Positions 27,024-46,759 are shown, numbered from the stretch's first letter. The stretch: DNA of 64,000 bases from Macrostomum lignano (GCA_002269645.1 NIVC01000353.1:434001-498000); one strand, 5' to 3'. The notes: generated from the sequence alone by a model not told the origin. Translations and numbers: made by a program.

Positions 27024-27326
27024 GTATCTATCCATCTCAGATACACTCGCATTAAATGTAGAACAACTGCAATTAGTGCATCACTCGCTAGTGCAGCATA
27101 ACACTTTTTCTGTCAGCATTTTATTTATGATTGTACTCATTAAAAAGCAAAATGGCGATTAAGTGTACATTAGATTAGGTCACTCGTTCATGAAATAAAA
27201 AGTACTTCATCAAAGAAAACATTGTCATTAGTAAGTGAAACTCCCTTATTACCTACGCACACTATGATAGGCAAAAATGTTTAGTGAATCTATGATGGAT
27301 TCCGTTTGCTTTCGACTTACTTTCCG

Positions 27327-27529
27327 TCAGCCCTGAGCAGCAGCGTCTTTTCGCTTCTTGTTAGCTTCCATCATTCTATTCACGAGTTCTTGAGCGGGGA
27401 CCTGCTTTTGCATCTTCGTCTTCGTAGCCGCCCGTTCTGCTTGAGACATGGCGGGCCGGTTTACGGGCCAGCTGATGTCCATTTTCTTCTTTGGTGGCGC
27501 CGACTTAAACGGATTTTTGACGCTCTTCA
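27327..27529 (-). CDS. Cationic secreted-peptide family, copy G1: intact exon 2 without its own exon 1 (duplicate of G2 exon 2)
   Basis: Acceptor ctttctcctttcccag|tg (phase 1). Encodes (V)KSVKNPFKSAPPKKKMDISWPVNRP..EANKKRKDAAAQG*. AATAAA on the minus strand near 27120. Confidence 0.7.
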
Positions 27530-27554
27530 CTGGGAAAGGAGAAAGGCGGCTCCG

Positions 27555-28345
27555 CTGTGTCTATTTGCCCTATTCCACTGTGTCTATCTGCCATATTCCA
27601 CTGTGTCTATCTGCCATATTCCACTGTGTCTATCTGCCATATTCCACTGTGTCTATCTGCCATATTCCACTGTGTCTATCTGCCCTATTTCACTGTGTCT
27701 ATCTGCCATATTCCGCTGTGTCTATTTGCCCTATTCCACTGTGTCTATCTGCCATATTCCACTGTGTCTATCTGCCCTATTCCACTGTGTCTATCTGCCC
27801 TATTCCACTGTGTCTATCTGCCATATTCCACTGTGTCTATCTGCCCTATTTCACTGTGTCTATCTGCCATATTCCGCTGTGTCTATTTGCCCTATTCCAC
27901 TGTGTCTATCTGCCATATTCCACTGTGTCTATCTGCCCTATTCCACTGTGTCTATCTGCCCTATTCCACTGTGTCTATCTGCTCTATTCCACTGTGTCTA
28001 TCTGCCCTATTTCACTGTGTCTATCTGCCCTATTCCACTGTGTCTATCTGCCTTATTCCACTGTGTCTATCTGCCATACGCCGCTGTGTCTATCTGCCCT
28101 ATTCCGCTGTGTCTATCTGCCCCATTCCGCTGTGTCTATCTGCCCTATTCCACTGTGTCTATCTGCTATATGCCGCTGTGTCTATCTGCCCTATTCCACT
28201 GTGTCTATCTGCCCTATTCCACTGTGTCTATCTGCCCTATTCCAGTGTGTCTATCTGCCCTATTCCAGTGTGTCTATCTGCCCTATTTCACTGTGTCTAT
28301 CTGCCTTATTATTCTGCTGTATCTATCTGCCCTATTTTCTGCCCT
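27555..28345. repeat. 23-bp minisatellite (TATTCCACTGTGTCTATCTGCCC), array 1
   Basis: Directly visible. Source of the CHIPLCLSALFH ORFs. Confidence 0.97.
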
Positions 28346-28349
28346 ATTC

Positions 28350-29340
28350 AAGGCTAGCAGCAGCCTGATGAGCATCCTTAAAAAGCAGGGACACTCGGTC
28401 CGCTTGATCCGAGACGCTAAAAAGTCAGCTCTCATACAACTTGGACTTTACATAGATTTTCAGTGGGCTTTCGGCTTTCAAGACTGCAGAAACCGAGACT
28501 GTGCTGTATGCCGACGACACGGCTGCTTTGGCCAAGTTTGTCCCGGTTCCACAGCAACTAAAATGGCCTACAGAATTTGCCAGAAGGTCCGCTGTGACTC
28601 CAGGTGCGCGGTCTACGCAATTCTTTGCAACACCTGCAATGGCCGTTGCATTTATGTCGGCGAAACAGGTGGAGCTATCAAGGTCAGACTCCAGGCCCAC
28701 CTAAGTGACATTAGGCTCGCTAAGGACACCCCTGTTAGCAGACATTTTTGCTCTCCGAATCACTGCCTCGACTATCTTCGCTTCATGGGGCTCTGGTATC
28801 TCAGCACCGAGAGCGAGACCAGCAAAGAAGGAGCGCTACGCAGACGCAGGGTCATGGAACAGAAACTCATCTCCCTGCTGAGCACGCAGTCACCTGCAGG
28901 CCTCAATACAATTAACAGCAACACAAGCGCTTGTATCCCAATAGTTATTCCTTTTACGGATAGATCGACTAATATTGTACACGAAATTCGCACTGTTCTC
29001 TCAAACCATGCACATGGGTTGGACACTGTTGCTGCGTACACTCGAGCACCCTCTCTAAAGGACATTCTTTGCCCCTCAAAACTGCCTGCCCTCACTGATG
29101 GTATTGATTAAACTTTCAGAGTGAGCACTATTGAGCAACGTGCGACGGAGACGCTATTTGATTTTATAAACTAACTCACAATTCATTTTATTTCCCACTT
29201 ACAATATAAACTTCGTTCCATTTTATAGCACAATTATACTATTGTAAAACCCTGACGAAGGCCATTTCACGGCCGAAATATCGGTTTACCATAATTCTTA
29301 TATTTTTTGACCTTTGTGACTATCTTATTTATTTCTCAGT
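28350..29340 (+). mobile_element. 5'-truncated Penelope-like element (subfamily A): end of RT thumb, Cys-rich linker, GIY-YIG endonuclease, 3' UTR with hammerhead
   Basis: C-terminal part of ORF 27306-29111: FQDCRNRDCAVC, AVYAILCNTCNGRCIYVGETGG..RLQAH, EQKLISLLSTQSPAGLN. Homologous but clearly diverged from 32780-33535. Confidence 0.9.
29247..29287 (+). ncRNA. Minimal type I hammerhead ribozyme (PLE-associated)
   Basis: AAACC-CTGACGA-a-GGCC(atttcac)GGCC-GAAA-TATC-GGTTT: stem I, CUGAnGA core, stem II, GAAA, very short stem III and UC cleavage site. Confidence 0.85.
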
Positions 29341-29364
29341 TACCTTGGATAGAGCTGCCACTGC

Positions 29365-31304
29365 GTGAGAGGTTTTTTCAAACGTCTATCTACTCCCTGG
29401 ACCAGTCAGCTCTCTCTTTGGCTATCTGAGAATGCCGAGAAGCAGCCGCGCACATGGCACAATTCTGAAAGAAAACCTGCTGAGCGAAATTACCGACAAC
29501 ATCAAAACACCCGCACTGGAGGGCATCAACACCGCTCACGGCCAGACCACAGGCCTCCAGACGCTACGCAGGACAGGACGGGCGGCGACCGGCAACAACG
29601 TCGGAATGCATGTGGGTCGCTGACAACCGCCGCGTCCGGAGTCGCCCGCCAAGTCAAACAGCTGTTTCGTGCTGCTCACCACCTGGAAAATTGGCAGGTG
29701 ACACCATCTTCGATCCGACTAAAGTCTCAGCAGCTGAAAACACTAATCAGGCCTGCAGTGCCCACGGAATCGACAAAATCGCGGATTGCTGAGAACGCCG
29801 ATCAGTGGGAAGTCAGCACGCTAGACACAATGCAGAGCCATTATGAGATCAGCATCCATCATCTAGCTGCTGAACTTCTGGAAGCCAGGAAGGACGCTGA
29901 CCCTTCTGATTGGGAAACCGGCTGGCAAGTCGGTTTTCACTGGGCGGCGAAGGACCTCGGCAGAAGATTCAGCTACAGCCCTGATCTGCTGCAATACCGG
30001 TTGAAAAAATGTCCATCGAGCTGAAGGTACCTGAATTTACTGCTAACAAAGGTAGGACTATCTCTTCTTTTGATACTGTGATTGTAAGTAACCAAACCAC
30101 CAGCTCTATGGGGGTTCCCGTTTCAAACCTCTTGTCTGGGGTGGTGGGTTCGAATCAACCCCACCAAGCCGCCAGCCCTGTGACAACTGAGCAGGGGAGG
30201 GAGCAACCAGCAGGGAATCGTCCCTCCAGCCCTTCAACGGGCATGGAAGAATCTCCCGACTGGCGAGGCTTTAACGAGGAACCGAGCATGCTAAGCCATA
30301 CGGACGAGGACAACCAAGCTTGCCCGCCGATTTTTCCGACAGAAGAGCCGCCTGAAGGACTCAATACGCAAATGCAGGGTCCAGTTGCCTGTGACCAGGG
30401 GCTGGACACGGGGGTGGTCTGTGACCAGACACCTCCACCTGCAAACTCCATTGCTGCTGATCAAAACGAATCAGCTATTTCGATACCTGCCATCTTGACT
30501 TCGAGTCGTCAACAGCAGAGTCAAGTCGCCTGTGACCAGGGGCTTGACACGGGAGTGGTCTGTGACCAGACATCCCCAGCTGCTGCTAATAGCAACAACA
30601 CCGATGCCAGCCAGGCTGACTCTTCCGTGTCTTTTGCGACACCCACCGACAACGATGCAGTTCTACAGAGTAGATTTGCTTGCGCTGAGCCACCCAGGCT
30701 TGCCAGTGACAACAATAGGGACAGTCTTGAGCTGACCCCTCCTCGATCGGCACTTGCTCAACCAGGCCAGATTAACGTCCATAAGGGATTTAAGAAAGAC
30801 TGGAAACTGACCCCTATCGAAAAGTCAACGATCGCGATCGGCGATGAGAGTCTCTCTGAGCCCGGGCAAGCGCACCCAGATGTACAATTTGAAATTTTTC
30901 CGAATCTACGCGCTGAGAACCTAATCAAGGTGCTGCGTGAGCAGTTGAAAAACCCTAGCTCAGCTGTCAAAGCGGTCATTCTCTTCCCTTGTGGTCATGA
31001 CCTGTTGAGACAATTTGAAGGTGTCCTCGACAAACAGCTCACGACAATTGTGAATCATTGTCGCAAGGCCTTTCCAGAGGCAAACATCTACACACTTGAC
31101 TCAGTGGTGGATGCCGAGGCAACGGACAGCGTCCGAAGCAACGTGGAAAAATTGAACCGCCATGCCCAGAATCTCAACCAGAAGGGGCACATGTCACTAC
31201 CCAGACAGGGTTTGACCTTCCTGTCAGACAAGGTCACACTATCTGACCAATCGGCCTTGGAGGTCTTCAGGATTGTCTACGGCAAAGTGCAAAAAAACTT
31301 GTAG
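29365..31304 (+). CDS. PLE ORF1: helical N-terminal domain, low-complexity linker and C-terminal SGNH/GDSL-esterase-like domain; frameshift at the A-run ~30004-30009
   Basis: ORFs 29365-30024 and 30009-31304 fuse (RLK-MSIEL) if one A is removed. KKDWKLTPIEKSTIAIGDESL..FEIFPNL..VILFPCGHD..AFPEANIY resembles SGNH-like ORF1 domains of retroelements. Confidence 0.6.
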
Positions 31305-31333
31305 GTTTTAGGAATGCGGCTAGCAACCAAGTC

Positions 31334-33535
31334 TTGAACTTATCGAATTATCGTCTTTCTGACTGCGAAACCGAAATTTTAGGAATGGGGAAGAACTTTG
31401 TGCCAGCCCCAATTGTTATGGGGTCCAGCGTCCTTTCTGACTCCATCAAGGTTTTCAAGCGGAGAATAGTTCTTAACTCCCTGCTTCAGCGTCGCACGTG
31501 TGCTTTCACCCCGCGCATCCCTTATACTGGCCGAGCTTCGATCCCCAACATCAACTTGGACAAGTGGCGCTCTCACAGAGACCTTTTTGAAAGCCTTGAC
31601 AGGATTAGAATTCCAAGAATCATACACAACAAGCCAAACCTTCAGGAGCAGCAGAGAATGGCACTGAAGACTCTTCGAGACAATAGCAGTATCGTCATTA
31701 AACCTGCCGACAAGGGCAGCAATATGGTCGTTTTGAATCGAACTGATTACATACTGGAAGCTAACAGGCAGCTCTCCAACAGGACCTTCTACCAACCCCT
31801 TGACACTGCAATGAGCGCCCAGACCAGTGCCATTATCAAAGCCATTTTTCAAGATCTTAAAGAAGAAAAGATAATTACTAATCATCAATACTCGCAACTG
31901 ATTCCGCCAACTATTCCAAGAGATCGATTTTTTTACCTTTTGCCAAAAATCCATAAGGATCCGAAGAATGGCCTACTCCTGGAGTGCCTCCTGGGAGACC
32001 CATTGTCTCGGACTGCAGCTCGGAAAGCTACATGAGCGCCAAATTTATCGATCTCTTCCTACAGCCGATCGCTAAGGAACAAGACTCCTTCATCCGAGAC
32101 ACGGACCACTTTCAAGCGGCTATCAATGATTTGATTTTTGAAAAAGACGAAAATGTCTTTCTGGTTACAATGGATGTTGAATCCCTGTACACCAATATTC
32201 CCACTGATAAGGGGATGGACGCCATTAGAGATGCCTTTCAAACATTTCCCCAAACCTCAAGGCCAGATAACCATCTTCTTGCGCTCCTGGACATTAACTT
32301 GAACAAAAATGATTTTGTTTTCAACGACGCGCTACCTTCAAGTCAAAGGCACAAGCATGGGAAAGGCCTTTGCGCCATCCTACGCCAACATATTTATGTC
32401 TGCCTGGGAATCCAAAGCTTTAGAAACTGCTCCGTTTACCCCTCGTTTCTTCAAGCGCTACATTGACGACATTTTTATGGTCTTCGTCGGCACTGAAGAC
32501 GAACTAAAGGAGATGCACAAGCATCTGAATGAGTTCGATTGCAACATCCGACTCACGATGCAATACAGCAGAGAGAAGGTTCACTTCCTGGACTGCTGTG
32601 TCAGTCTGACTGACGAAGGCAACAACAAGAGACTTTCGTGCTCAATCTACTTCAAACCCACCGATTCACGTCAGCTTTTAAATCCGGGGTCTTTTCACCC
32701 AAAGCACACTTTTAAAGGTATACTGAAATCTCAGTTCCTCCGTTACGCTCGCCGTTGCACATTTAAAGAAGACTTCGATGAGGCCAGCAGCAGCTTAACA
32801 AGCATCCTGAAGAAACAAGGTTATTCTGTGCGCTTAATCAGGGATTCTAAAAAATCTGCCCTCATCCAGCTGGGCCTCTACATTGATGGTCGGTGGGAGT
32901 TCGGCTTCCAGGATTGTGGCAATCTAAGCTGCCGTCCTTGCAGAGAGCACGGGAATTTTGGCCAAGTTTGTTTAGGGTCCAGCGCTACAAAAATGATTTA
33001 CAAAATTTGTCAAAAAGTCCGCTGTGACTCCAGGAATGTGGTGTATGCCATTCTGTGCAAGACTTGCAATGACCGCTGTATCTACGTAGGTGAGACTGGA
33101 GGCGCTCTTAAAGTCAGACTTCAGGCTCACCTGAGCGACATTAGACTGGCTAAAGACACCCCAATCTCCAGGCACTTTCGGTCACCAAACCACAGTATTC
33201 AGGACCTCCGCTTTATGGGTCTGTGGTACCTCAGTACTGAGTGCCTGACCACTAAAGAGGGCGCTCAACGCAGGCGGAGGAATATGGAACAGAAGCTCAT
33301 CGCTTTACTACAGACCCAGACTCCAGCAGGCTTAAACACCGTCATCACTGAAAAAGACGCCTGCATCCCAATAGTGATCCCTTTCACGGACCACTCTGGG
33401 CGAATTGTTCATCAAATTCGCACGGCCATTTCGAACCACGCTGCAGAGCTGGATACGGTGGCTGCCTATACTCGCTCACGCTCATTAAAGGACATTCTAT
33501 GTCCACCCAATCTGCCTGCCGTAACTAATGGTTAG
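31334..33535 (+). CDS. PLE ORF2: TERT-like reverse transcriptase plus GIY-YIG endonuclease; two single-base frameshifts (~31968, ~32330)
   Basis: Motifs: IKPADKGS, FYLLPKIHK, PGRPIVSDC, TMDVESLYTNIP, QVKGTSMGKAFAPSYANIFM, RYIDDIF, HFLD, SFHPKHTFKGILKSQFLRY, VVYAILCKTC..IYVGET. Confidence 0.93.
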
Positions 33536-33713
33536 GCCCGAAACTCAAACCTCTTTTCAGATGAGCACTAGATGTACAGATGTACACACGCGTTGCAACG
33601 TGCCCGCCCAACCATATTGATTATTTTATTTTATTCGCGTCTTTCTATACTCACTATAAATATTTAACTCTGTTTTAATTTGCCCTTTTTTCACAGTTTT
33701 TTATTTACAATTT

Positions 33714-33750
33714 ACCCTGACGAAGACCCTGTTTAGGTCGAAAATTCGGT
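33714..33750 (+). ncRNA. Minimal type I hammerhead ribozyme (PLE-associated)
   Basis: ACC-CTGACGA-a-GACC(ctgttta)GGTC-GAAA-ATTC-GGT. Confidence 0.85.
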
Positions 33751-34112
33751 TCTTTTCTTAGAATTAAAGAAATTGTGAATTTGCTTCAACTGTGTGCGTG
33801 GTTTCATTTCGCATTATCTATCTCAGATACACTCGCATTAAATGTAGAACAACTGCAATTAGTGCATCACTCGCTAGTGCAGCATAACACTTTTTCTGTC
33901 AGCATTTTATTTATGATTGTACTCATTAAAAAGCAAAATGGCGATTAAGTGTACATTAGATTAGGTCACTCGTTCATGAAATAAAAAGTACTTCATCAAA
34001 GAAAACATTGTCATTAGTAAGTGAAACTCCCTTATTACCTACGCACACTATGATAGGCAAAAATGTTTAGTGAATCTATGATGGATTCCGTTTGCTTTCG
34101 ACTTACTTTCCG

Positions 34113-35662
34113 TCAGCCCTGAGCAGCAGCGTCTTTTCGCTTCTTCTTAGCTTCCATCATTCTATTCACGAGTTCTTAAGCGGGGACCTGCTTTTGCATC
34201 TTCGTCTTCGTAGCCGCCCGTTCTGCTTGAGACATGGCGGGCCGGTTCACGGGCCAGCTGATGTCCATTTTCTTCTTTGGTGGCGCCGACTTAAACGGAT
34301 TTTTGACGCTCTTCACTGGGAAAGGAGAAAGGCGGCTCCGCTGTGTCTATTTGCCCTATTCCACTGTGTCTATCTGCCCTATTTCACTGTGTCTATCTGC
34401 CATATTCCGCTGTGTCTATTTGCCCTATTCCACTGTGTCTATCTGCCCTATTCCACTGTGTCTATCTGCCCTATTCCACTGTGTCTATCTGCTCTATTCC
34501 ACTGTGTCTATCTGCCCTATTCCACTGTGTCTATCTGCTCTATTCCACTGTGTCTATCTGCCCTATTCCACTGTGTCTATCTGCTCTATTCCACTGTGTC
34601 TATCTGCTCTATTCCACTGTGTCTATCTGCCCTATTTCACTGTGTCTATCTGCCATATTCCGCTGTGTCTATCTGCCCTATTCCACTGTGTCTATCTGCC
34701 CTATTTCACTGTGTCTATCTGCCCTATTCCACTGTGTCTATCTGCTCTATTCCACTGTCTATCTGCTCTATTCCACTGTGTCTATCTGCCCTATTTCACT
34801 GTGTCTATCTGCCATATTCCGCTGTGTCTATCTGCCCTATTCCACTGTGTCTATCTGCCCTATTTCACTGTGTCTATCTGCTCTATTCCACTGTCTATCT
34901 GCCATATTCCGCTGTGTCTATTTGCCCTATTCCACTGTGTCTATCTGCCCTATTCCACTGTGTCTATCTGCTCTATTCCACTGTCTATCTGCCATATTCC
35001 GCTGTGTCTATTTGCCATATTCCACTGTGTCTATCTGCCCTATTCCACTGTGTCTATCTGCCATATTCCACTGTGTCTATTTGCCCTATTTCACTGTGTC
35101 TATTTGCCCTATTCCACTGTGTCTATCTGCCCTATTCCACTGTGTCTATCTGCCCTATTTCACTGTGTCTATCTGCCTTATTATTCTGTGTCTATCTGCC
35201 ATATTCCGCTGTGTCTATTTGCCCTATTCCACTGTGTCTATCTGCCGTATTCCACTGTGTCTATCTGCCATATTCCACTGTGTCTATCTGCCCTATTTCA
35301 CTGTGTCTATCTGCCCTATTTCACTGTGTCTATCTGCCTTAATCTTCTGTGTCTATCTGCCATATTCCGCTGTGTCTATTTGCCCTATTCCACTGTGTCT
35401 ATCTGCCCTATTTCACTGTGTCTATCTGCCTTATTATTCTGCTGTGTCTATCTGCCTTATTATTCTGCTGTATCTATCTGCCCTATTTTACAGTATGTAT
35501 CTGCTCTAATCCTTAATCTTATTTCGAGCCCTATCAGCTAAAACACAAATAAGCATATTTACCTTTTGCCATAATAGGCCTGGGGCATCCTTGAACTTCA
35601 GTAGCTAACATCAGAGCCATTACCAGCACGCACAGAGCTGTGAGAAGTTGGCAGCTAGACAT
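34113..35662 (-). CDS. Cationic secreted-peptide family, copy G2 (exon 1 35563-35662, exon 2 34113-34315) with premature TAA at 34176-34178
   Basis: Exon 1 MSSCQLLTALCVLVMALMLATEVQG-CPRPIMAK, donor AAAG|GTAAAT (phase 1), acceptor tttcccag|tg. CAA in G1 is TAA here. Confidence 0.75.
34340..35500. repeat. 23-bp minisatellite, array 2 (G2 intron)
   Basis: Same unit as 27555-28345. Confidence 0.97.
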
Positions 35663-36513
35663 TTTCGTATTAATATTTCTAGATTTGTTTAGATTTTCGG
35701 CTCGTGAACTAATCAGTTGTATTGTAGAGGTGGCAGTTCTTCAACTGAAGTCACAACAGCTCAAAGACGCTTTGTTACGAGTGGCTATGCGGCACCAGCG
35801 TAGTGAAAGTGCTACCGAAAATTTCTGGCAACAAGCATAACTTGCGTTATTTTTTGCCACAGACAAGTTGACAAGTAAGATATGGGCAACCAACTGCGAT
35901 AGAATCTCGCAAAAGTGCAAGTTTTTATCATTTCACTTATTACAGAATATTTAGAATTTATCTAGTGCAGACTTGATATGCAAATGGTGTTGAATTTTTT
36001 TAAAAGTTTGAAAGGATAAAAGCATATCTTTTCGTTATTGTTTGAGATGTCAATGCTGATGCTAACCAAGATGTTCTTTTTCTGGAATTGATTGATTTCT
36101 AGACTATTGCTTAAAGTACTGTTTTTGATCAACGAAGTAAGAATTTTAAGGCTCACGGTGAGAATCTCTAAGATGTAAGAAGTTTAATTTGGTGTAGATT
36201 AATTTTGCGCTGTGGCGGCCAGAATGTACGCGACCGGCAGCACCAGTGCAGCCGCACTGGAAACCCCCCAACCTCTGTCTAGCTGAGGTGGGGTGGGTGC
36301 TCACTAAGCTAGCCGGCTCGCTAAGCCGGGGGGGGGGGAGTTGGCGTAGCCAATCACGCCACGCCACCTTTTCGCACCTCCCTATTCCCCTCAATATCGC
36401 GCTGTTTGTGTAAATATAAATATACGCACAAAGCAGCGCAAAATCTTTGCTGCCATTGCATCTATTGAACTAAGAAGGCCTTCCGCCTCAGCGCTAAAAT
36501 TTCGTTCCGACAA

Positions 36514-36905
36514 ATGCCTGAGTCTGAGAGTGAACGCCAGCTTCGACTAAAAAATCAGTGTGAGTGTCGATCACGACTTGAAACGCGTTCACAGGTAGGA
36601 GAGACATCGAACATTGGTAGGAAGAAGACGCACGCGGCTGTAAACGATTCATCTGAACGGGAGGATAGGTTGACGAGGCGTTCGGCTTCGTGGTGGACGT
36701 TGGTGTTCCAATTGTAGGCGGAATGGGAGATGCAAATTCCTATTACTCTTACACCTGCTGCTTCGTCCTAAACAGTTTCTATTGCCGGTGATGGAAATTG
36801 TTTTTTTTCATGCGGTAATTGCTGACCAGTTCGAAGGTACGCCTCCACATATGGAGTATATTAGCGTTCGACGTGCTATTGCAGAGCATATTTCTCCCCT
36901 ACTAT
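36514..36905 (+). pseudogene. Helitron/Helentron-like fragment: charged-repeat N-terminus and broken OTU protease motif
   Basis: MPESESERQLRLKNQCECRSRL.. at 36514. At 36781 IAGDGNCFF(+1 T)HAVIADQF..YISVRRAIAEHI is an OTU catalytic motif. No Rep/helicase seen, so the Helitron origin is inferred. Confidence 0.45.
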
Positions 36906-37249
36906 GTATGCTCGTAGTAATGGTCCGATCGGGTTTAGTTTGGTAGGGTGTTAAACCAGTGGGGCGTGGCTCTTGTGCTTTGATGCGGGGTGGTGGGGCC
37001 GTGCTTTGGTCCCGTGCCATCGGTTTGGGTGCCTTTATTTAGCGCCTCTGGCCCGCTAAGTACGTGTCGATTTTTCTCTTTTAAGTCTCCAAGATGTTCT
37101 AAGTTTTGAGTCCTTTAAAATAAAGTAAATACTCGTAAATACGAGTTTACGTAAATACAGTACGCTCGTACGCTCGTATTACTGCGGCCAGACTCGAACT
37201 TGCGCCTCTCGTGCTATCTGCCTTGACTTCGTCTCACCGGTTTAACTAT

Positions 37250-37700
37250 GGATCAGATTGTTCCACTGTTTCTATTCCACTGGGTCTATCTGCCCTATTC
37301 CACTGTGTCTATCTGCCCTATTCCACTGTGTCTATCTGCCCTATTCCACTGTGTCTATCTGCCCTATTCCACTGTGTCTATCTGCCCTATTCCACTGGGT
37401 CTATCTGCCCTATTCCACTGTGTCTATCTGCCCTATTCCACTGTGTCTATCTGCCCTATTCCACTGTGTCTATCTGCCCTATTCCACTGTGTCTATCTGC
37501 CCTATTCCATTGTGTCTATCTGCTCTATTCCACTGTGTCTATCTGCCCTATTCCACTGTGTCTATCTGCCCTATTTCACTGTGTCTATCTGCCCTATTCC
37601 ACTGTGTCTATCTGCTCTATTCCACTGTGTCTATCTGCCCTATTCCACTGTGTTTATCTGCCCTATTTTGCTGTCTATCTGCCCTATTCCACTGTGTCTT
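37250..37700. repeat. 23-bp minisatellite, array 3 (not inside a recognisable peptide gene)
   Basis: Same unit. Confidence 0.96.
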
Positions 37701-38049
37701 TCAGGTTGACATTTTCGCGTAAAATTTTTTACTAAAATTACATTCTAACTCGCGTACTAATAGTTTGTAGAAGCGAATTTTTTTCTACACCATAAAGTCG
37801 TGTTTTTACGAGTTTAACCACAGACATTTGATAATTAAGTAGTACCAGAGAATATTGAGTATACATAGAATGCCAACGAAGCTTTTAAAAAGTGAAGCCG
37901 ATTTTCGCGTTCCGCCGGAAGTTTGGTTTTGGACCATAGACTAAAAATATATTTAAAAGCGTTATTTATTCTCATAGACCAAAGAGCGGCAGCACTTGTA
38001 GGAGTATATTTATTACAAGTATATTTTTAGCTCAAAACAATTTAGTCGC

Positions 38050-39700
38050 GTCGGGTGTCCTGAAGACTGGCATCATAAAGACATGGTGCGCAGAGAATCC
38101 GAGACTTCCAGACAATCAACCCCCGTTTGCTCTTGACACCTTCGCAAACTGAAACCCAGCAGAATGTTTCTTTTAAACAGAAACTTTACAGCACCTGTTG
38201 CACTAGTTTCAAACTTTGGTATAGCCACGACAGCGCACCTTGTTCCCATTCCGAAAAAGCCAGGTACGATCAGGATCATTTAACACAGGGAATATACACT
38301 CGTAGCTGATATTGTGCACCCCGAAGCTCTTCAACAAGATCTTGCGTGGGGCCGAGGAGCCTCTGGCGGCTGTCTACCTGCAGCGACAACAGGCTGCTGT
38401 TGACGAAGCCATCCATGGGCGTCACCGCTGCTGGACCCGACGCCAAACGGCGCGCGGCCTGGTCCGTCATCAAACGCTCTGACCGGGCGGAAGTGGAGCA
38501 TCCCGCTCAACCCGGCTGGCGATAATCCGGATCAGTGGAAGAAATAACGTCGCCCCCGCTGCCAAACGATCTGAGGCTGCCGCAGGGGACGGCATTTTGC
38601 TGACAGAGGGTTTCAATGTAGCACAAGTCAGCACAGCCGACGTTGTGATGCTCGCTCAAAGACTTCGGGTGGCAAAGCGCTGGGTCCGGACGAGGTGCCC
38701 GAAATCTTCCGTATCTTCGCTATTCCGAAGAAACCGTGTACCACGCGCGGCACAGTGGTGCAGATCCTGGCTCTTCGGCGAGTCATCGAGGAAGCGCGGA
38801 CCCCCAGTCCAGCCTGATTACTCTCTTATTGACTTCAGGAAGGTCGTGAGGGCCGTGCTCCCAATGGTGCTTACAATTGTGATGTTCAACGTGCCAGAGC
38901 AGCTGATTTCCGCCGTCATGGCGCTGTACCATGGCACGAGAGCTGCTATGCGGACACCGGACGGCCTGTCGGATTTCTTTGAGACATCCTCTGGGGTGCT
39001 TCAGGGAGATACGCTTGAGCCATTCCTGTTCGTCCTGCTGCTTGACTGGGTGCTGCGAACCGCCCCAGCTCCCTTCTACCGACGACGGCTTCCTGCTGCA
39101 ACGACGCGTGGGTCTTCGCCAACCGGAGAGGCGGCTCGGCGTGCTTGACTACGTCGAAGATTTTACCTTGCTGTCCTCGACCCTCGAGGGCGCCCAGCGC
39201 CAGCTAGACTGGCTGTTGAGCGTTGCAGTGAGTGTCGGACTGGTAATCAACACGCGAAAGACCGTCGTGCTCTGCGTGCCGGGCGACATCGAGGCTGCAA
39301 TTTTCTGCCGAGACGCTGACAGACAGGGGACGAGGCTTCCGCGCTGTCAGCAGTTCGTCTACATCGGCGGTCTGATGCCTGACGTTCGCGAGGCCTGCTA
39401 GGCGCTACAAGTGCGGCTACGAGCGAGTCACCAATGCGGCACTCTACCGCCGCACCGGCCTGTCCCGTCCTAGCGAACTGTTGCGCACCGGGCAACTCCA
39501 TCTGGCAGGCCACATCCAAGCTGAGTCGTACTGCTCACAACCGGTGCCGAAGGTGCTGTTGCTCAAGCTGCAGGCACCCTACCGGCAGGGCAGGTGCGCA
39601 CTCGGCGTTTCGTCGACTGCCTGCTGACTGAAATGATGCCGGCGGTGCGGCCTACATTCGCGCCCAGGCCTTGAAACGAGCCCTGTGACCCAGGCTCACT
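38050..39700 (+). mobile_element. Degenerate RTE-clade non-LTR retrotransposon fragments (RT and 3' end)
   Basis: TAHLVPIPKKPG (~38230), IPKKP (~38722), GVLQGDTLEPFLFVLLLDWVLR, LDYVEDFTLLS..SVGLVINTRKT, FVYIGG. Many frameshifts. Followed by a (GTT)n tract at 39740-39780. Confidence 0.85.
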
Positions 39701-39739
39701 CTTGACTGGCTGACAATGCATTTTATCGTTGTTTTTGCT

Positions 39740-39779
<40 letters not shown>

Positions 39780-39808
39780 TTGTATTTTTATATTTGTTTA
39801 AACGTATA

Positions 39809-40657
39809 CACCATTTTACCTCCTATTTTGAACAAAGTCTTGTTCAAAAGAAACAAGCAGAACTTCAATTCAAACACTTTAGGAAATATCAGCCCTTGCG
39901 AAACTTCAATTCAAACAAAGTCCCTTTCTATTGAAACAGAAGAACTTCAATTCAGACTGTCTGTGGCCAAAATTGTCCCCGAATGACGCGCATGCACAGA
40001 TTTGAAATTCAAAAGAAACAAAGTCACATTCTATTTCGACAGAGATTTTTGCGCATACATTTAGATACGAGTACATTTTTAGTACATTAATCTAATTTTT
40101 TGTTTTTCCTGTACTGAAAAACTGTACAATCGTTGCGCAATAAGAAACGATATGAATGCTGAAGATCAGATTGAAGAAGACGATGATCAATTGCTGGAAG
40201 AAGGTGGAATCGGTGAATAGCACGGGAATCAGTCGATTGCGACCTATCGGCGAGACATTCTGTACAGCATGGTGGACAGAACCATTGGCTGCATCTCTGT
40301 GGACAAGTGCACTGAGTGGTTCAACCATGTGTTTACATGCTTCCCTCGCTGCCTTGGTGGACAGGCAATTGATAGTTAGGTGTCTCAAGTTGGCCAACTG
40401 ACACTGTCTTGTTCCTGTTTTTCATTTTACTCTTATGTTCGTCGATATGCTGTGTTTTATCCCTTTGTCGAAATAGAATGTGACTTTGTTTCTTTTGAAT
40501 TTCAAATATGCGCATGCGCGTCATTCGGAGATAATTTTGGCCACAGACAGTCTGAATTGAAGTTCTTCTGCTTCAATAGAAAGGGACTTCGTTTGAATTG
40601 AAGTTCTGCTTGTTTCTTTTGAACAAGACTTTGTTCAAAATAGGAGGTAAAATGGTG
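39809..40657. mobile_element. MITE with long (~230-250 bp) TIRs and TA target duplication
   Basis: TA|CACCATTTTACCTCCTATTTTGAACAAAG.. at 39807-9 and ..GGAGGTAAAATGGTG|TA ending 40657-9. Arms 39809-40070 and ~40465-40657 are inverted copies, the left with an internal duplication. Confidence 0.85.
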
Positions 40658-41050
40658 TAATACATCTGTTAGTAAAAGTAAATAAATAACATGCATACAT
40701 ATAGATATACATGTATATGTAGAGTAGAGCGTTGCAGACAATACATCTTAGGCATTCAGTACGAGTACACGTAACTCGTACGGCTCGTAGATGGATACAT
40801 GCTTTATTACGGCAATAAAGCTATTTTCTAACTTGCAATTTTATTTATTACAGTTTCGCTACTCTCATTAAAAACAAAATTGGTGACTGAAAATAACATA
40901 AAAAAAGCTACTCATCCTCGTTCAAAAAATAAACAGTAGGCAGTAAAACTTACATTGACTGCTCAAAAACTACGAGTATAATCAGTAAAAAGTAGAGCTC
41001 TTTGACCACCACATGAGCTTATTGTCGAAAACAGTAAACTTGTTTTCGCT

Positions 41051-41975
41051 TTATCGGCGGCCGGCCTGCTTTCTTTTAAAATAAGCCGCTTCCCGCTGGC
41101 TTTTCATATTCTTCAAATCCTTATTGATGGAATCTATTGGGGCCTTTTTTGACGTGGTAGGCCGGTTCACGGGCCAGCTGATGTCCAACTTCTTTTTTTG
41201 TGGCGGTGGCGCCGATTTAAAAGGATTTTTGACGCTCTTCACTGTGGAAGGAGAGTGCGGCGGCTCCGCTGTGTCTACCTGCCCGATTCCGCTGTGTCTA
41301 TCTGCCCCATTCCACTGTGTCTATCTGCCCCATTCCACTGTGTCTACCTGCCCTATTCCACTGTGTCTATCTGCCCCATTCCACTGTGTCTATCTACCCA
41401 TTCCGCTGTGTCTACCTGCCCTATTCCGCTGTGTCTACCTACCCTATTCCGCTGTATCTATCTACCCATTCCGCTGTGTCTACCTGCCCTATTCCGCTGT
41501 ATCTATCTACCTATTCCGCTGTGTCTACCTGCCCTATTCCGCTGTATCTATCTACCCATTCCGCTGTGTCTACCTGCCCTATTCCGCTGTATCTATCTAC
41601 CCTATTCCGCTGTATCTATCTACCCTATTCCGCTGTATCTATCTACCCTATTTTGCTGTGTCTATCTACCCTACTCTGCTGTGTCTACCTGCCTTATTCC
41701 GCTGTGTCTATCTACCCTACTCCGCTGTCTACCTGCCCTATTCCACTGCGTCTATCTACCCTACTCCGCTGTCTACCTGTCCTATTCCGCTGTGTCCATT
41801 TACCCTATCCCACTGTGTCTGTTCCTAAATCGTATTTCGAGCCCTATCAGCTAAAACACAAATAAGCATATTTACCTTTTGCCATAATAGGCCTGGGGCA
41901 TCCTTGAACTTCAGTAGCTAGCATCAGAGCCATTACCAGCACGCACAGAGTTGTGAGAAGTTGGCAGCTAGACAT
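41051..41975 (-). CDS. Cationic secreted-peptide family, copy G3, intact, 96 aa (exon 1 41876-41975, exon 2 41051-41241)
   Basis: MSSCQLLTTLCVLVMALMLATEVQG-CPRPIMAK|VKSVKNPFKSAPPPQKKKLDISWPVNRP..REAAYFKRKQAGRR*. Canonical phase-1 GT-AG intron with acceptor ctctccttccacag. Confidence 0.82.
41270..41820. repeat. 23-bp minisatellite, array 4 (G3 intron; diverged variant units)
   Basis: Same family, TATTCCGCTGTGTCTACCTGCCC-type variants. Confidence 0.95.
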
Positions 41976-42899
41976 TTTTGTATTAATATTTCTAGATTTG
42001 TTTAGATTTTCGGCTCGTGAACTAATCAGTTGTAGAGGTGGCAGTTCTTCAACTGAAGTCACAACAGCTCAAAGACGCTTTGTTACGAGTGGCTATGCGG
42101 CACCAGCGTAGTGAAAGTGCTGCCGAAAAATTGCTGGCAACAAGCATAACTTGCGTAATTTTTTGCCATAGATAAGTAAGATTTGATCAATCAAGTGCGA
42201 TAGAATCCGGCAAAAGTGCAGATTCTTATTATTTCCCTATTTACTTTCGCTGATTACAGGAAATTTAGATTTGGAACTTCTAAAGACCTTTACTGCTGTG
42301 TCCCAAAGTAGACTGACGTCGCAATTAGAATTTAATGTAACTTGCATCACTGAATATAGATATTTTAGTATATTAGAAGCTCTATGGCTTTTTTGTTAAT
42401 TATCGTAGTTTTATACAAGAAAGAAGTCATGCATAGAATGAGTATGAGATGAATGTACATAAGTCTACGTACATTCAAATTTAATCAACACATCTCATCC
42501 CAGATAGTTAACCAACGAATGGACAGAAGCCCTCGAAGTCACACTCGCCTCCTACAATCTGACAGGTGCGCAACTGAAAGTCTGACATTTTCAAGCCGAG
42601 AGCTACCGGGCAAGCGACCATCCAACTCTCCGTTGAGGGACCACTCTGTTTGGACACCAGCAATAACGATACTGGATCTCCTTGCGCGACACCGCAGCAC
42701 CAGCTGCCCGTGATCGCCAGGGGTCAGCGGAATGGCAGCGACGCCTCCCGTTGCACTCGGATGCTTAGAGCCGCCTACAGCTGAGTCAAAAGAGGCGACA
42801 GCAGTGTAGCCACCCATGGAAGCGACAATTTTAGCTTGAGAGGCAGCCAAGGAGTTAGGTCAATCTTCCAGGTGATTATGTGATCATCTCCAGAGGTCA

Positions 42900-43510
42900 C
42901 ATTCCGCTGTGTCTATCTGCCCTATTCCACTGTGTCTATCTGCCCTATTCCACTGTGTCTATCTGCCCTATTCCACTGTGTCTATCTGCCCTATTCCGCT
43001 GTGTCTATCTGCCCTATTCCACTGCGTCTATCTGCCCTATTCCACTGTGTCTATCTGCCCTATTCCGCTGTGTCTATCTGCCCTATTCCACTATGTCTAT
43101 CTGCCCTATTCCACTGTGTCTATCTGCCCTATTCCGCTGTGTCTATCTGCCCTATTCCACTGCGTCTATCTGCCCTATTCCACTGTGTCTATCTGCCCTA
43201 TTCCGCTGTGTCTATCTGCCCTATTCCACTGTGTCTATCTGCCCTATTCCGCTGTGTCTATCTGCCCTATTCCACTGTGTCTATCTGCCCTATTCCGCTG
43301 TGTCTATCTGCCCTATTCCGCTGTGTCTATCTGCCCTATTCCGCTGTGTCTATCTGCCCTATTCCGCTGTGTCTATCTGCCCTATTCCGCTGTGTCTATC
43401 TGCCCTATTCCGCTGTGTCTATCTGCCCTATTCCGCTGTGTCTATCTGCCCTATTCCGCTGTGTCTATCTGCCCCATTCCACTTTGTCTATCGACTGTAT
43501 CTGCCCTGTT
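42900..43510. repeat. 23-bp minisatellite, array 5
   Basis: Same unit, highly homogeneous. Confidence 0.96.
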
Positions 43511-43777
43511 CCATACGAACGTAGGCTAGTTGACCTTGACGCCAAAATTCTCTATGAATGGACGATGATTCTGTATTTACCTGTTAGAGATTTCTACTCG
43601 CTGATGGTATTCAAATGCAACTTTTCAATGCCTAAAATCTATGAGAGTGACGTCGGCACTGTACAGGAACTGCATGACTATTTCTCTGACTTCTCTCAGT
43701 AAAAGCAATGTCGAAAGAGTATGATCTATATTGTACCATTGTCACTGCAGACAAGACATCTTAGATAATTAGTGTGT

Positions 43778-44673
43778 AAACTGCCAGCCGACAACTGCCA
43801 GCCGACAACTGCCAGCCGACAACTGCCAGTCGACAACTGCCAGCCGAGAAAACTGCCAGCCGACAACTGCCAGCCGACAATTGCCAGCCGAGAAAACTGC
43901 CAGCCGACAACTGCCAGCCGACAATTGCCAGCCGAGAAAACTGCCAGCCGGAAAACTGCCAGCCGACAACTGCCAGTCGACAATTGCCAGCCGAGAAAAC
44001 TGCCAGCCGGAAAACTGCCAGCCGACAACTGCCAGCCGAGAAATCTGCCAGCCGACAACAGTTGAAGGAGAAAGCATTCAAATTTTGTATTTTAGGTAGC
44101 CTTTGTTCTTTCTTTGAAAGCTTTATTTAAGTAAAGTAATTTAATATACTTATCTAGGATTGCGTCATATAGCAATCGCAATCGCAAATTAAATAATAAA
44201 GTAAATATAAACTTTCAATACAGAAATATTTACAATAGGCATTACAAAATGCCTTCTCCTTCACATATATACTTCTAATGGAAATCTGAAAAATTTAGGG
44301 AAGAGAAGGGCGACATTTAAGGCTACCCCACAAGCCTTTTGCTAGCCAAACAGTTTTGTGCTTTTTACTTAGCTAATAAGTAGGCTACAGTAGATTCAAT
44401 TATCTAGAACTTGTCCGCTGGCAGTTGTCGACTGGCAGTTGTCGGCTGGCAGTTTTCCGGCTGGCAGTTTTCTCGGCTGGCAATTGTCGACTGGCAATTG
44501 TCGGCTGGCAGTTGTCGGCTGGCAGTTTTCCGGCTGGCAGTTTTCTCGGCTGGCAATTGTCGGCTGGCAGTTGTCGGCTGGCAGTTTTCCGGCTGGCAGT
44601 TTTCTCGGCTGGCAATTGTCGGCTGGCAGTTGTCGGCTGGCAGTTGTCGGCTGGCAGTTTTCCGGCTGGCAGT
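43778..44673. mobile_element. Foldback-like structure: two inverted arms (43778-44060, 44412-44673) built of 14-16-bp CTGCCAGCCG(ACAA/AGAAAA/GAAAA) units
   Basis: Arms are reverse complements around a ~350-bp AT-rich spacer. No TSD found. Confidence 0.55.
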
Positions 44674-44775
44674 TGGGGTGGACCCCCCATGTCCAGCAGA
44701 GTGGACGACAGCGCACCTAGGTCCCAGTTCGAAGAATCCCGGCACGACCAAGATCGAAGAACACAGGGGCAAATA
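44674..44775 (+). mobile_element. Short RTE RT fragment
   Basis: PAEWTTAHLGPSSKNPGTTKIEEHRG, homologous to the fragment at ~38230. Confidence 0.6.
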
Positions 44776-45262
44776 CGTATTCAAATTAAACCTTACGATA
44801 CCTACAATTTATGAGTGATGTTTACACTCAACTGCATCACCATTACTTTGAGCTCTTTCGCTAAAATCAATGTCAAAACGCGTTTTCGAATATTTGTTGG
44901 ATGCATTACTTTACGCTTGTATACAAGCTATAGAGTACACGACTAGAGCGTTGCAGACAATATTGTACATGTTAGGCATTCAGTACGAGTACATGCAACT
45001 CGTAGATGGATACATGCTTCATTATGGCAAAAAGCTATTTGCAACTTGCAATTTTATTTATTAAAGTTTCGCTACTCTCGTTAAAAAGGGTGACTGAAAA
45101 AAATGTACAAAAAAGCTATACTCGTACTCCTTCAAAAAAATAAACAGCGTGCTAGTAGTCAATAAAGAACTCACATTGACTGCTCAAAAACGATGATCAG
45201 TAAAAAGTAGAGCTCTTTGACACCACATGAGCTTGTTGTCCAATGCAGTAAACTTTTTCGCT

Positions 45263-45677
45263 TCATAGCTTGCCGGCCTGCTTTCTTTTAAAATAAGCCG
45301 CTTCCCGTGCTTTTTTTCATTTTCTTCAAATCCTTATTGATGGACTTCATTGAGGCCATTTTTGACTTGACAGGCCGGTTCACGGGCCAGCTGATGTCCA
45401 GCTTCTTTCTTGGAGGAGGTGGCGGCGATTTAAACGGATTTCTTATGTTCTTCACTGCGGAAGAAAGGAGAGGCTCCGCTGTGACGAACTGCTCTATTCC
45501 GCCGTGTTTATCTGTCCTATTATTCCTACATCGTACGTAGAGCCCATGTCAACTAGAACACAAATTAGGATATTTACCTCTTCTTAAAATAGGCCTAGGG
45601 CATCCTTGAACTTCATTAGCTAACATCAGAGCCGTTACCAGCAAACACAGACTGGTGAAAAGTTGACTGTTCGACAT
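45263..45677 (-). CDS. Cationic secreted-peptide family, copy G4 (exon 1 45578-45677, exon 2 45263-45454); +1 A in an A7 run near 45311-45317 shifts the C-terminus
   Basis: MSNSQLFTSLCLLVTALMLANEVQG-CPRPILRR|VKNIRNPFKSPPPPPRKKLDISWPVNRP... As assembled it ends KMKKSTGSGLF* (45288). With one A fewer it ends AREAAYFKRKQAGKL*, like G3. 123-nt intron. Confidence 0.75.
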
Positions 45678-45962
45678 TTTCGAAATTAATATTTTTATGC
45701 TTTTTTTACTCTTACTAAAATGGTAGCAATTATCTACTCGAATTAGAAATAGCTCAAAGCTTAGGTTTATTTTGGCCATGGACGATTGCAAAGATATAAA
45801 GTCAAATAATTGACTAAGATCTGGCGAAAGTGCAATATTTCTTCAAGTTGACTTACATGTACTTTACGCAGATGTCTATGGCCTAGACACCAACTGAGAG
45901 TCGGCATTACCTAAACCCTACATGTAGTCACATGCCAGATTTCGTTGGACATTATTAATTTT

Positions 45963-46759
45963 ATGCTGTCGCAGCCAGCAAAATTTCTTACTTGGAGCAA
46001 ATGCTTGGCATTCCTGTGTCTACTGGTTGTGATTACAAATCTTATTTCGTTGCCCATAGCAACCGAAGGATGCAGTAGCGGTAAGAAGAGATGGAATCTT
46101 GTTTCTGAACTTGGGAAATTTGTATAACGAGGGGACTACTCAGGTATAGAAGCGTCCGAAACTAAACGTTTCTTGGAAAATTTAGATTCTTAGAAAAGTT
46201 AGAAAATTAAAACTCTTATAGCTGAGTGTGTAGCAATAAAGTGTAACAGAATGATAAAATATGATAAAATAGATTTATAAAACCAATGAGTCGAGCTTTA
46301 ACCATGAATCTTTTATGATTTTTTATGATATAAAATTAACACAGAATCCTAATCTTCTGAACGAAAAAAGCTCTATGAATATCAATAGAGCTATAATAAA
46401 AAAGCAAGACATCAAAATATGAACATTGTCTCATATCAAGACGAAATTTAAAAAGCAATAATAGTTTTTGTGCTGAAAAAATGAAAACCTATATCTCCAT
46501 AATGTTTTTTTCGGAAAAAACCTGCCTCCTCTCCTAAAATTTTCAAAGAAACAGTTTCCAATCATTTTAGTTAAGTAGTCCTTGGTGTATAATAACTTTA
46601 CTTATAATTTAGTTTCCGCCCCCTAATCCTCTCGCCCGTTTCCCAGTCCAGTGCGTCAGACTAGTAAAGTGGTCTGCACCGTCTACCCGCCTCCAAACTC
46701 GAACAAGGGCCTACAAGCATGCTACCAAACATAAGCAGGCCAACATTTCGCAATGCTAG
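45963..46759 (+). CDS. Putative small secreted protein G6, head-to-head with G4 (exon 1 45963-46080; exon 2 starts 46647 or 46652)
   Basis: MLSQPAKFLTWSKCLAFLCLLVVITNLISLPIATEG-CSS, strong donor AGCG|GTAAGA (phase 1). Branch point CTAAT, pyrimidine tract and CAG at 46621-46646. Exon 2 is uncertain. Confidence 0.5.

Follow-up and report, generated by a model that had tools for sequence, protein, structure and literature searches.

A window of 64,000 nucleotides from the Macrostomum lignano DV1 contig NIVC01000353.1 (positions 434001-498000, assembly GCA_002269645.1) contains on its minus strand a cluster of small two-exon genes, designated G1 to G4. They represent a three-paralog orphan family (A = G4, B = G3, C = G2/G1), which is already deposited as hypothetical proteins and is uncharacterised. 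According to the reading we favour, to which we assign a probability of about 0.5, this family is restricted to Macrostomum and encodes secreted polycations, which are proposed to be a gland product binding polyanions. In its type it is a familiar and ordinary one, namely a taxon-restricted family of secreted proteins.

The original prediction, which had been made from the sequence alone, recognised no family and suggested a homology check. In agreement with it, no Pfam, PDB or HMMER match was found outside M. lignano, and the matches of the Pfam, PDB and profile searches included neither a characterised family nor any transposase similarity. A word-indexed search of 5.8e9 proteins gave no family member outside M. 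lignano, an index-free profile hidden Markov model search of 1.84e9 representative proteins gave no relative outside the family, and neither Pfam nor the PDB sequences, both searched at E<=10, gave a match outside it. The Pfam search detected no reverse-transcriptase or transposase similarity of the family proteins at this threshold. Full-text literature searches with the four gene identifiers (Mlig020625, Mlig033008, Mlig009388, Mlig027967) and with peptide fragments found no paper.

Gene models, transcript support and synteny

The minus strand of the window carries three complete genes (G4, G3, G2), and G1 consists of an exon 2 and a partial intron. Four copies of a single architecture had been proposed; this holds for exon 2, but exon 1 exists only three times and G1 is an exon-2-only duplicate. 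The motif coding for DISWPVNRP, formulated as a degenerate 26-nt pattern, matches the minus strand at positions 27454, 34240, 41160 and 45373 (no match in 100 shuffles), and the exon 1 pattern coding for EVQG-CPRPI matches only at 35573, 41886 and 45588. A tblastn search of the window with all four products (E<=10) gave nothing beyond these four copies of exon 2 and three copies of exon 1. In G4, G3 and G2, exon 1 comprises exactly 100 nt and is followed by the donor GTAAAT; exon 2, which varies between 140 and 203 nt in the family, is preceded by CAG. The GT-AG intron is in phase 1, because exon 1 has a length of 100 nt. Thus, the foreseen 100-nt exon with EVQG followed by CPRPI, the intron class and the splice junctions (45578/45454 in G4, 41876/41241 in G3, 35563/34315 in G2) were all reproduced exactly. 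The spliced products consist of 88 (G4), 96 (G3) and 79 (G2) residues; a combination of G2 exon 1 with G1 exon 2 gives 100 residues.

The product of G3 is 100% identical over 96 aa to the GenBank entry PAA84953.1 ("hypothetical protein BOX15_Mlig020625g1"), and the annotated range of its coding sequence (CDS) coincides with our gene model. The Mlig_3_7 annotation was built from transcript evidence only, i.e. from StringTie/TACO on RNA-seq data, BLAT of a de novo transcriptome, TBONE and TransDecoder (Wudarski 2017, PMC5730564); consequently, the predicted splice is RNA-supported and the genes are not hidden, as had been assumed: two of them are annotated in GenBank. The second entry, PAA84952.1 (94 aa), is a three-exon annotation of G2 spanning 8.3 kb (window 27380-35662). 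By means of cryptic GT/AG sites, it joins G2 exon 1, G2 exon 2 as far as ...MQKQ/GT, and a part of G1 exon 2 that is out of frame. We take this as an artefact of mapping, the two copies being 99% identical, or as a sign of read-through. For G4, there is no annotation on NIVC01000353.1.

The same cluster is found on two further contigs, NIVC01001911.1 and NIVC01001978.1, which are 95-98% identical to the window. On all three contigs it is flanked by a short-chain dehydrogenase (SDR) gene and an NHL-repeat gene. This arrangement fits the published redundancy of the DV1 assembly (Wudarski 2017, PMC5730564), i.e. one syntenic locus assembled three times. The other contigs carry three complete paralogs: A (G4 type, model P0002, 96 aa), B (G3 type) and C (G1/G2 type, 100 aa). 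In the assembled copy L004, paralog C has an exon 1 of its own (L004:22923). For this reason we suspect the model P0004 (PAA62066.1/PAA62672.1; L004:10001-24164), which joins a B-type exon 1 to the exon 2 of C across 14 kb: it is probably an annotation artefact of transcripts mapped onto near-identical paralogs. The assembly copies also differ in structure, as a segment of about 5.9 kb (L004:11867-17770), which separates B from C in L004, is absent from the window (40309/40321).

The synteny bears on the question whether the open reading frames (ORFs) are host genes at all or are carried by a transposon or a satellite. The genes are embedded in minisatellites, orphan 23-bp arrays occur between them, and a retroelement lies inside the cluster. 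This retroelement, however, is on the opposite strand and absent from L004, and the proteins resemble neither transposases nor reverse transcriptases. Above all, the family is confined to a single syntenic locus, represented by three allelic or homeologous contigs having the same SDR and NHL neighbours; on account of this, we regard a transposon origin as practically ruled out.

Divergence of the paralogs, selection and disabling changes

Paralogs A and B are alike over the whole protein, the tail included. The homology of B and C covers the 5' flank, exon 1 and the intron, but in exon 2 it ends, at the nucleotide level, directly after DISWPVNRP. Accordingly, C would either have taken up a different tail sequence at a duplication breakpoint, or its tail would be an old paralogous one that a conversion tract did not reach. 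The region upstream of G3 (41976-42130) matches the C type, as represented by G2 of the window and by C of L004, and not the B counterpart in L004 (L004:9846-10000). This discrepancy indicates gene conversion between B and C in this haplotype, by which the 5' regions would have been homogenised.

A comparison of dN/dS among the paralogs had been proposed beforehand; substitutions were counted according to Nei-Gojobori. In the core (residues 26-61), B and C are separated by 5-7 synonymous and 3 non-synonymous changes, which corresponds to an omega (dN/dS) of 0.09-0.14; a binomial estimate for the 7:3 count gives P ~0.001 against neutrality. These values argue clearly for purifying selection on the core of this orphan family (omega ~0.1). 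For A and B, the overall omega is 0.83, and in the tail, which is the least conserved part of the protein, 13.5 non-synonymous stand against 1.5 synonymous changes, a difference that is not significant. Between contigs, 3 synonymous changes are all that separates the two B alleles, and the six signal-peptide replacements between C alleles all exchange one hydrophobic residue for another. The identity of exons and flanks between contigs was too uniform to reveal constraint at the allelic level.

Two genes of this haplotype carry changes affecting the tail. G4 contains a run of seven adenines (A7), where all three other copies have six (A6), i.e. a +1 frameshift. If one A is removed, the ORF extends to 45263 and encodes 96 aa with the G3-type tail KKAREAAYFKRKQAGKL; the frame-restored protein differs from P0002 only at residue 3 of the signal peptide (N vs S). 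The assembled G4 tail STGSGLF is a frameshift or homopolymer assembly error, not a real feature, and the A7 run may be of the latter kind. In G2, a nonsense codon (TAA instead of the CAA found in G1 and L004) removes the last 21 residues, and the 79-aa product is devoid of the last predicted helix. On the two other contigs, the full-length ORFs of all three paralogs are intact. The divergent basic tails, which had been thought to fit a lineage-specific effector family, therefore do not testify to a rapid evolution of effectors: without the frameshift the tails of G4 and G3 are alike, the tail of G2 is truncated by a stop, and the homology of C simply ends after DISWPVNRP. Clustering and copy turnover, which had been noted as well, were both seen.

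One could argue that the genes are transcribed but decaying orphan ORFs, belonging to a young de novo or a rapidly dying family that has no function in the organism. The frameshift in G4, the nonsense codon in G2 and the truncated duplicate G1 would be in line with decay, as would the lack of homologs in the search of 1.84e9 proteins and the omega of about 0.8 between A and B. On the other hand, the A7 run could be due to a mistake in the assembly, all three paralogs are full-length on two other contigs, and the omega of the core is as low as ~0.1. Moreover, the changes in the signal peptide keep its hydrophobicity, and the B alleles deviate from each other at synonymous sites only. We therefore judge decay to be very unlikely.

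Protein properties and possible function

The N-termini encoded by exon 1 have the properties of signal peptides: a hydrophobic h-region of 15 residues, within the expected ~10-15 after the start (mean Kyte-Doolittle values 2.37-2.81), is followed by the polar c-region (T/N)EVQG with small residues at the decisive positions, V at -3 and G at -1. Based on hydropathy, the -3/-1 rule and AlphaFold2 models, we infer that cleavage of the signal peptide takes place behind EVQG and that a hydrophilic polycation is secreted. The mature chains would consist of 54-75 residues (~6-8.4 kDa) with a pI of 10.7-11.8, a proline content of 11-16% and a grand average of hydropathicity of about -1; each contains one Cys, at position +1. 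The counts made by hand for the prediction were exact, both for this single Cys and for the G1-type chain (75 aa, 18 K/R vs 5 D/E) and the G3 chain (71 aa, 20 vs 4). The conserved core reads CPRPI...NPFKS..PP..KK[L/M]DISWPVNRP. For the B type, AlphaFold2 predicts a signal helix (residues 3-22), disorder from 23 to 68 with predicted local distance difference test (pLDDT) values of 50-60, and a C-terminal helix (69-95) with pLDDT above 90. For the C type, whose tail is not homologous to that of B, the prediction is similar: a signal helix (4-20), disorder at ~21-62 and C-terminal helices at 63-73 and 79-99, again with pLDDT above 90.

In these tail helices, the best 18-mer has a hydrophobic moment (muH) of 0.27-0.41, which was reached by 645-1646 of 2000 shuffles; the mean hydrophobicity is -0.36 to -0.55. 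The positive control LL-37 gave a muH of 0.89, reached by 1 of 2000 shuffles. As the C-terminal helix is hydrophilic and not amphipathic, with a moment no better than that of shuffles, an antimicrobial mechanism based on an amphipathic helix, as in LL-37 or in the helminth defence molecules (HDMs), is not supported and was rejected.

Exon 1 encodes the cleavable signal peptide plus the first mature residues, and exon 2 the remainder; in B and C, the phase-1 intron has been expanded by the 23-bp minisatellite. In the course of events which we propose, the product would enter the endoplasmic reticulum, be cut after EVQG and leave as a polycation of 54-75 aa composed of the invariant N-terminal Cys, a disordered core rich in Pro and Lys, and a hydrophilic, basic C-terminal helix. 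As a secretory product of gland cells it could bind electrostatically to polyanions such as glycans of the mucus or glycocalyx, the granule matrix or microbial surfaces. The conserved core might confer the binding specificity, the free Cys might permit dimerisation or tethering, and the protein would act without lysing membranes through an amphipathic helix. A further reading is quite unlikely: the proteins would form a Macrostomum-specific class of secreted effectors not described before, whose activity resides in the ~36-residue disordered Pro/Lys core with its obligatory N-terminal Cys. Instead of being antimicrobial peptides of the classical kind, they would function as tethered ligands or organise a matrix, be it in mucus or rhabdites, during mating or in the defence against microbes. 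In this case, the N-terminal Cys might serve for covalent dimerisation; it might also be N-acylated, by analogy with Hedgehog and Spitz-type ligands, in which such a Cys precedes basic residues.

Several observations weigh against our favoured reading. Polyanion binding is speculative, as it was deduced from composition alone. In this haplotype, the tail-disrupting changes described above affect two loci out of three, and for this reason selection may be weak; the overall omega for A vs B is 0.83, and the substitution counts are very small. In addition, the gene identifiers were not found in the supplements of Grudniewska 2018, Wudarski 2017, Brand 2020, Weber 2018, Wiberg 2021 and a 2026 aneuploidy paper, where the positional and social RNA-seq tables of Brand 2020 were covered only to the early Mlig00 identifiers.

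A comparison with known systems helps to delimit the family. The HDMs of trematodes (FhHDM-1/MF6p, Sm16 clade) are ~90-aa precursors having a signal peptide, a mature chain of ~8 kDa and a C-terminal helix at ~69-89; their hallmark is a conserved, largely hydrophobic C-terminal stretch of ~35 residues with an amphipathic helix (PMC3093369), and they were reported to be trematode-specific. The M. lignano proteins resemble them with respect to flatworm origin, precursor size, signal peptide, ~8 kDa chain and the position of the helix (69-95). However, the profile search of 1.84e9 proteins gave no sequence homology to FhHDM-1/Sm16, and the conserved part is the amphipathic C-terminus in HDMs but the disordered middle in the M. 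lignano family. With cathelicidins of the LL-37 type, the family shares secretion, cationic charge and a helical C-terminal segment; it differs in the moments of its tails given above, and its proteins are far more hydrophilic (grand average of hydropathicity about -1). Proline-rich antimicrobial peptides (apidaecin, oncocin, Bac7) are short and Arg-rich and contain about 25% Pro or more and repeated PRP/PxP motifs. The M. lignano chain is also cationic, has a PRP motif at its mature N-terminus and contains a disordered, Pro-containing part, but it has less Pro (11-16%), a single PRP and more K than R, and it is two to three times longer. The micro-exon genes (MEGs) of schistosomes are often clustered, lineage-restricted genes for small secreted proteins, whose coding regions consist of many symmetric micro-exons of 6-36 bp. 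Lineage restriction, small secreted products, frequent clustering and a signal peptide on its own exon are common to both systems; in contrast to MEGs, the M. lignano genes have no more than two exons, both of ordinary size (100 nt and 140-203 nt).

The resemblance to flatworm prohormones (npp, spp, FLP, NPF) requires closer consideration. These have a signal peptide, a small precursor, dibasic sites and a short conserved stretch amid variable sequence. If the family were prohormone- or neuropeptide-like, convertases would cut at KK, KR and RR sites and release (L/M)DISWPVNRP(x), perhaps also CPRPI... and NPFKS..PP, as receptor ligands, and the tails would be spacers. The size of the precursor is right, a signal peptide and multiple dibasic sites are present, and the conserved 10-mer, which lies amid variable sequence, is always preceded by (K/R)KK. 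Purifying selection is concentrated on the core, whereas the tails can vary or even disappear; they look dispensable because the C-terminal helices are without an amphipathic signature. Against this speaks the sequence following the 10-mer, which contains no conserved basic or other C-terminal cleavage site (the three paralogs read VKSK, TTSKK and AMSQAER) and no conserved Gly-dibasic amidation signal; the only site of this type is AGRR at the very end of B, in place of which A has AGKL. Repeated peptide copies are missing, and the search of 1.84e9 proteins found no similarity to any flatworm prohormone. Furthermore, the variable end of the putative peptide would be its C-terminus, whereas in most neuropeptides it is the opposite one, and the whole 36-residue core is conserved, not merely a short peptide. 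Altogether, a precursor of this type seems unlikely.

A reproductive secretion, originating from the seminal fluid or prostate, from the cement or shell glands or from the antrum, transferred or deposited during mating or egg laying and evolving quickly under sexual selection, would be a further possibility. For the most part, the prostate-limited transcripts of M. lignano code for small secreted proteins that have no homologs (Weber 2018); the candidates Mlig-pro1-76 resemble the cluster genes in species, size, secretion and lack of homologs. That the family is lineage-restricted and clustered, with copy turnover and gene conversion, would suit this origin, and so would the excess of non-synonymous over synonymous changes between the tails of A and B, were it significant. 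The cluster genes, however, do not belong to the transcripts whose in situ patterns were published: none of the four identifiers is listed in the complete compilation of M. lignano transcripts characterised by in situ hybridisation, which covers prostate, antrum, gonads and glands (Brand 2020 Additional file 16). Their absence from the searched supplements of Weber 2018, Grudniewska 2018 and Wiberg 2021 is weak evidence, as these were targeted screens. Due to the missing entries in the in situ compilation and in the supplements of Weber 2018, the seminal-fluid version is weakened, and we consider a reproductive role to be rather improbable.

Repeats, the G1 duplication and implications

The coordinates of all features of the cluster are compiled in the following table.

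Table 1. Features of the gene cluster, in window coordinates.
Feature	Position	Strand	Remarks
G4 (paralog A) exon 1, 100 nt	45578..45677	-	encodes MSNSQLFTSLCLLVTALMLANEVQG/CPRPILRR; donor GTAAAT
G4 intron, 123 nt	45455..45577	-	GT-AG, phase 1; about two proto-units of the 23-bp repeat, no array
G4 exon 2	45263..45454	-	stop of assembled ORF at 45288 (88 aa, tail STGSGLF)
G4 A7 homopolymer	45311..45317	-	+1 frameshift site; A6 in L002, L003, L004
G3 (paralog B) exon 1	41876..41975	-	annotated CDS start of PAA84953.1
G3 intron, 634 nt	41242..41875	-	23-bp minisatellite at 41265-41820
G3 exon 2 CDS	41051..41241	-	96-aa spliced product = PAA84953.1
G2 (paralog C, 5' copy) exon 1	35563..35662	-	donor GTAAAT
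G2 intron, 1247 nt	34316..35562	-	23-bp minisatellite at 34337-35512
G2 exon 2, 79-aa product	34176..34315	-	ends at premature TAA, 34176-34178
Probable Penelope-like retroelement	28337..33814	+	between G1 and G2, antisense to the genes; RVT_1, then GIY-YIG
G1 intron remnant	27551..28336	-	23-bp minisatellite, 34 copies; no exon 1 upstream
G1 exon 2, intact C type, 67 codons	27327..27529	-	partial gene copy; after CAG
G1 3' flank	27029..27326	-	together with exon 2 near-identical to G2 3' flank and exon 2
Orphan 23-bp array upstream of G3	42901..43492	-	no adjoining exon relics
Orphan 23-bp array upstream of G2	37272..37699	-	no adjoining exon relics

The introns had been described as minisatellites. 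Arrays of the 23-bp repeat indeed occupy those of G3 (24.5 copies), G2 (51) and G1 (34), but the intron of G4 is a plain one. Both intergenic arrays of this repeat are conserved in position on L004. Between G3 and G4, a 14-bp repeat (AACTGCCAGCCGAC) forms two inverted arrays (43779-44059 and 44411-44675) about 350 bp apart, which resemble a foldback element. The NHL-repeat gene downstream of the cluster (annotated 412 aa, window 18001-25802, minus strand) contains three large minisatellite arrays in its span (18409-20907, 21553-23740, 24521-25026); because of this, minisatellites in gene spans may be general in this genome and not specific to the family. Elsewhere in the window, an ORF of 756 aa (691-2958, plus strand) with weak matches to Transposase_21 (tnp2) and DUF4218 is probably a remnant of a DNA transposon. 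Rfam and tRNA scans of the window found no RNA genes.

G1 is a partial copy and not a fourth gene, as its minisatellite runs directly into the neighbouring retroelement and exon 1 is absent. The segment 27029-27550, containing G1 exon 2 and its 3' flank, is 99.2% identical to the corresponding segment of G2 (33815-34336). In the 5.5-kb insert between the two copies, a single ORF (32309-33532) combines RVT_1 (E = 1e-4) with a following GIY-YIG domain (E = 1e-3), a layout which is Penelope-like; a second GIY-YIG is located in 28338-29108, and a 5'-truncated tandem partial copy is apparent from the comparison of 28351-28650 with 32781-33080. Since both Pfam scores are below the gathering thresholds, we call the insert only a probable Penelope-like retroelement. 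Its 3' end adjoins (TATC)2, a remnant of the microsatellite located behind the gene. On its two sides, at least 1.3 kb of host sequence, comprising 3' flank, exon 2 and minisatellite, are present as a direct duplication with 100% identity over the first 300 nt. Both the element and the G1 duplication are missing in L004. Judging from these comparisons, G1 represents a recent duplicate of the 3' half of the gene, apparently made in association with the Penelope-like insertion. The duplication around the element is reminiscent of a target-site duplication of unusual length, or of one that arose by repair at the edge of the microsatellite.

The locus leaves current concepts unchanged. It provides a small example of how an orphan cluster changes, namely by the expansion of intronic minisatellites and by gene conversion between paralogs; it also illustrates a 1.3-kb duplication flanking a Penelope-like element, which copied half a gene, and disabling mutations that are specific to one haplotype of a hidden polyploid. 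Should the proteins turn out to be abundant products of glands, they would offer a molecular handle on a secretion of flatworms (mucus or rhabdite, pharyngeal or reproductive) about whose protein components next to nothing is known, and the genes would supply a compact, strong and tissue-specific promoter for the transgenesis of M. lignano.

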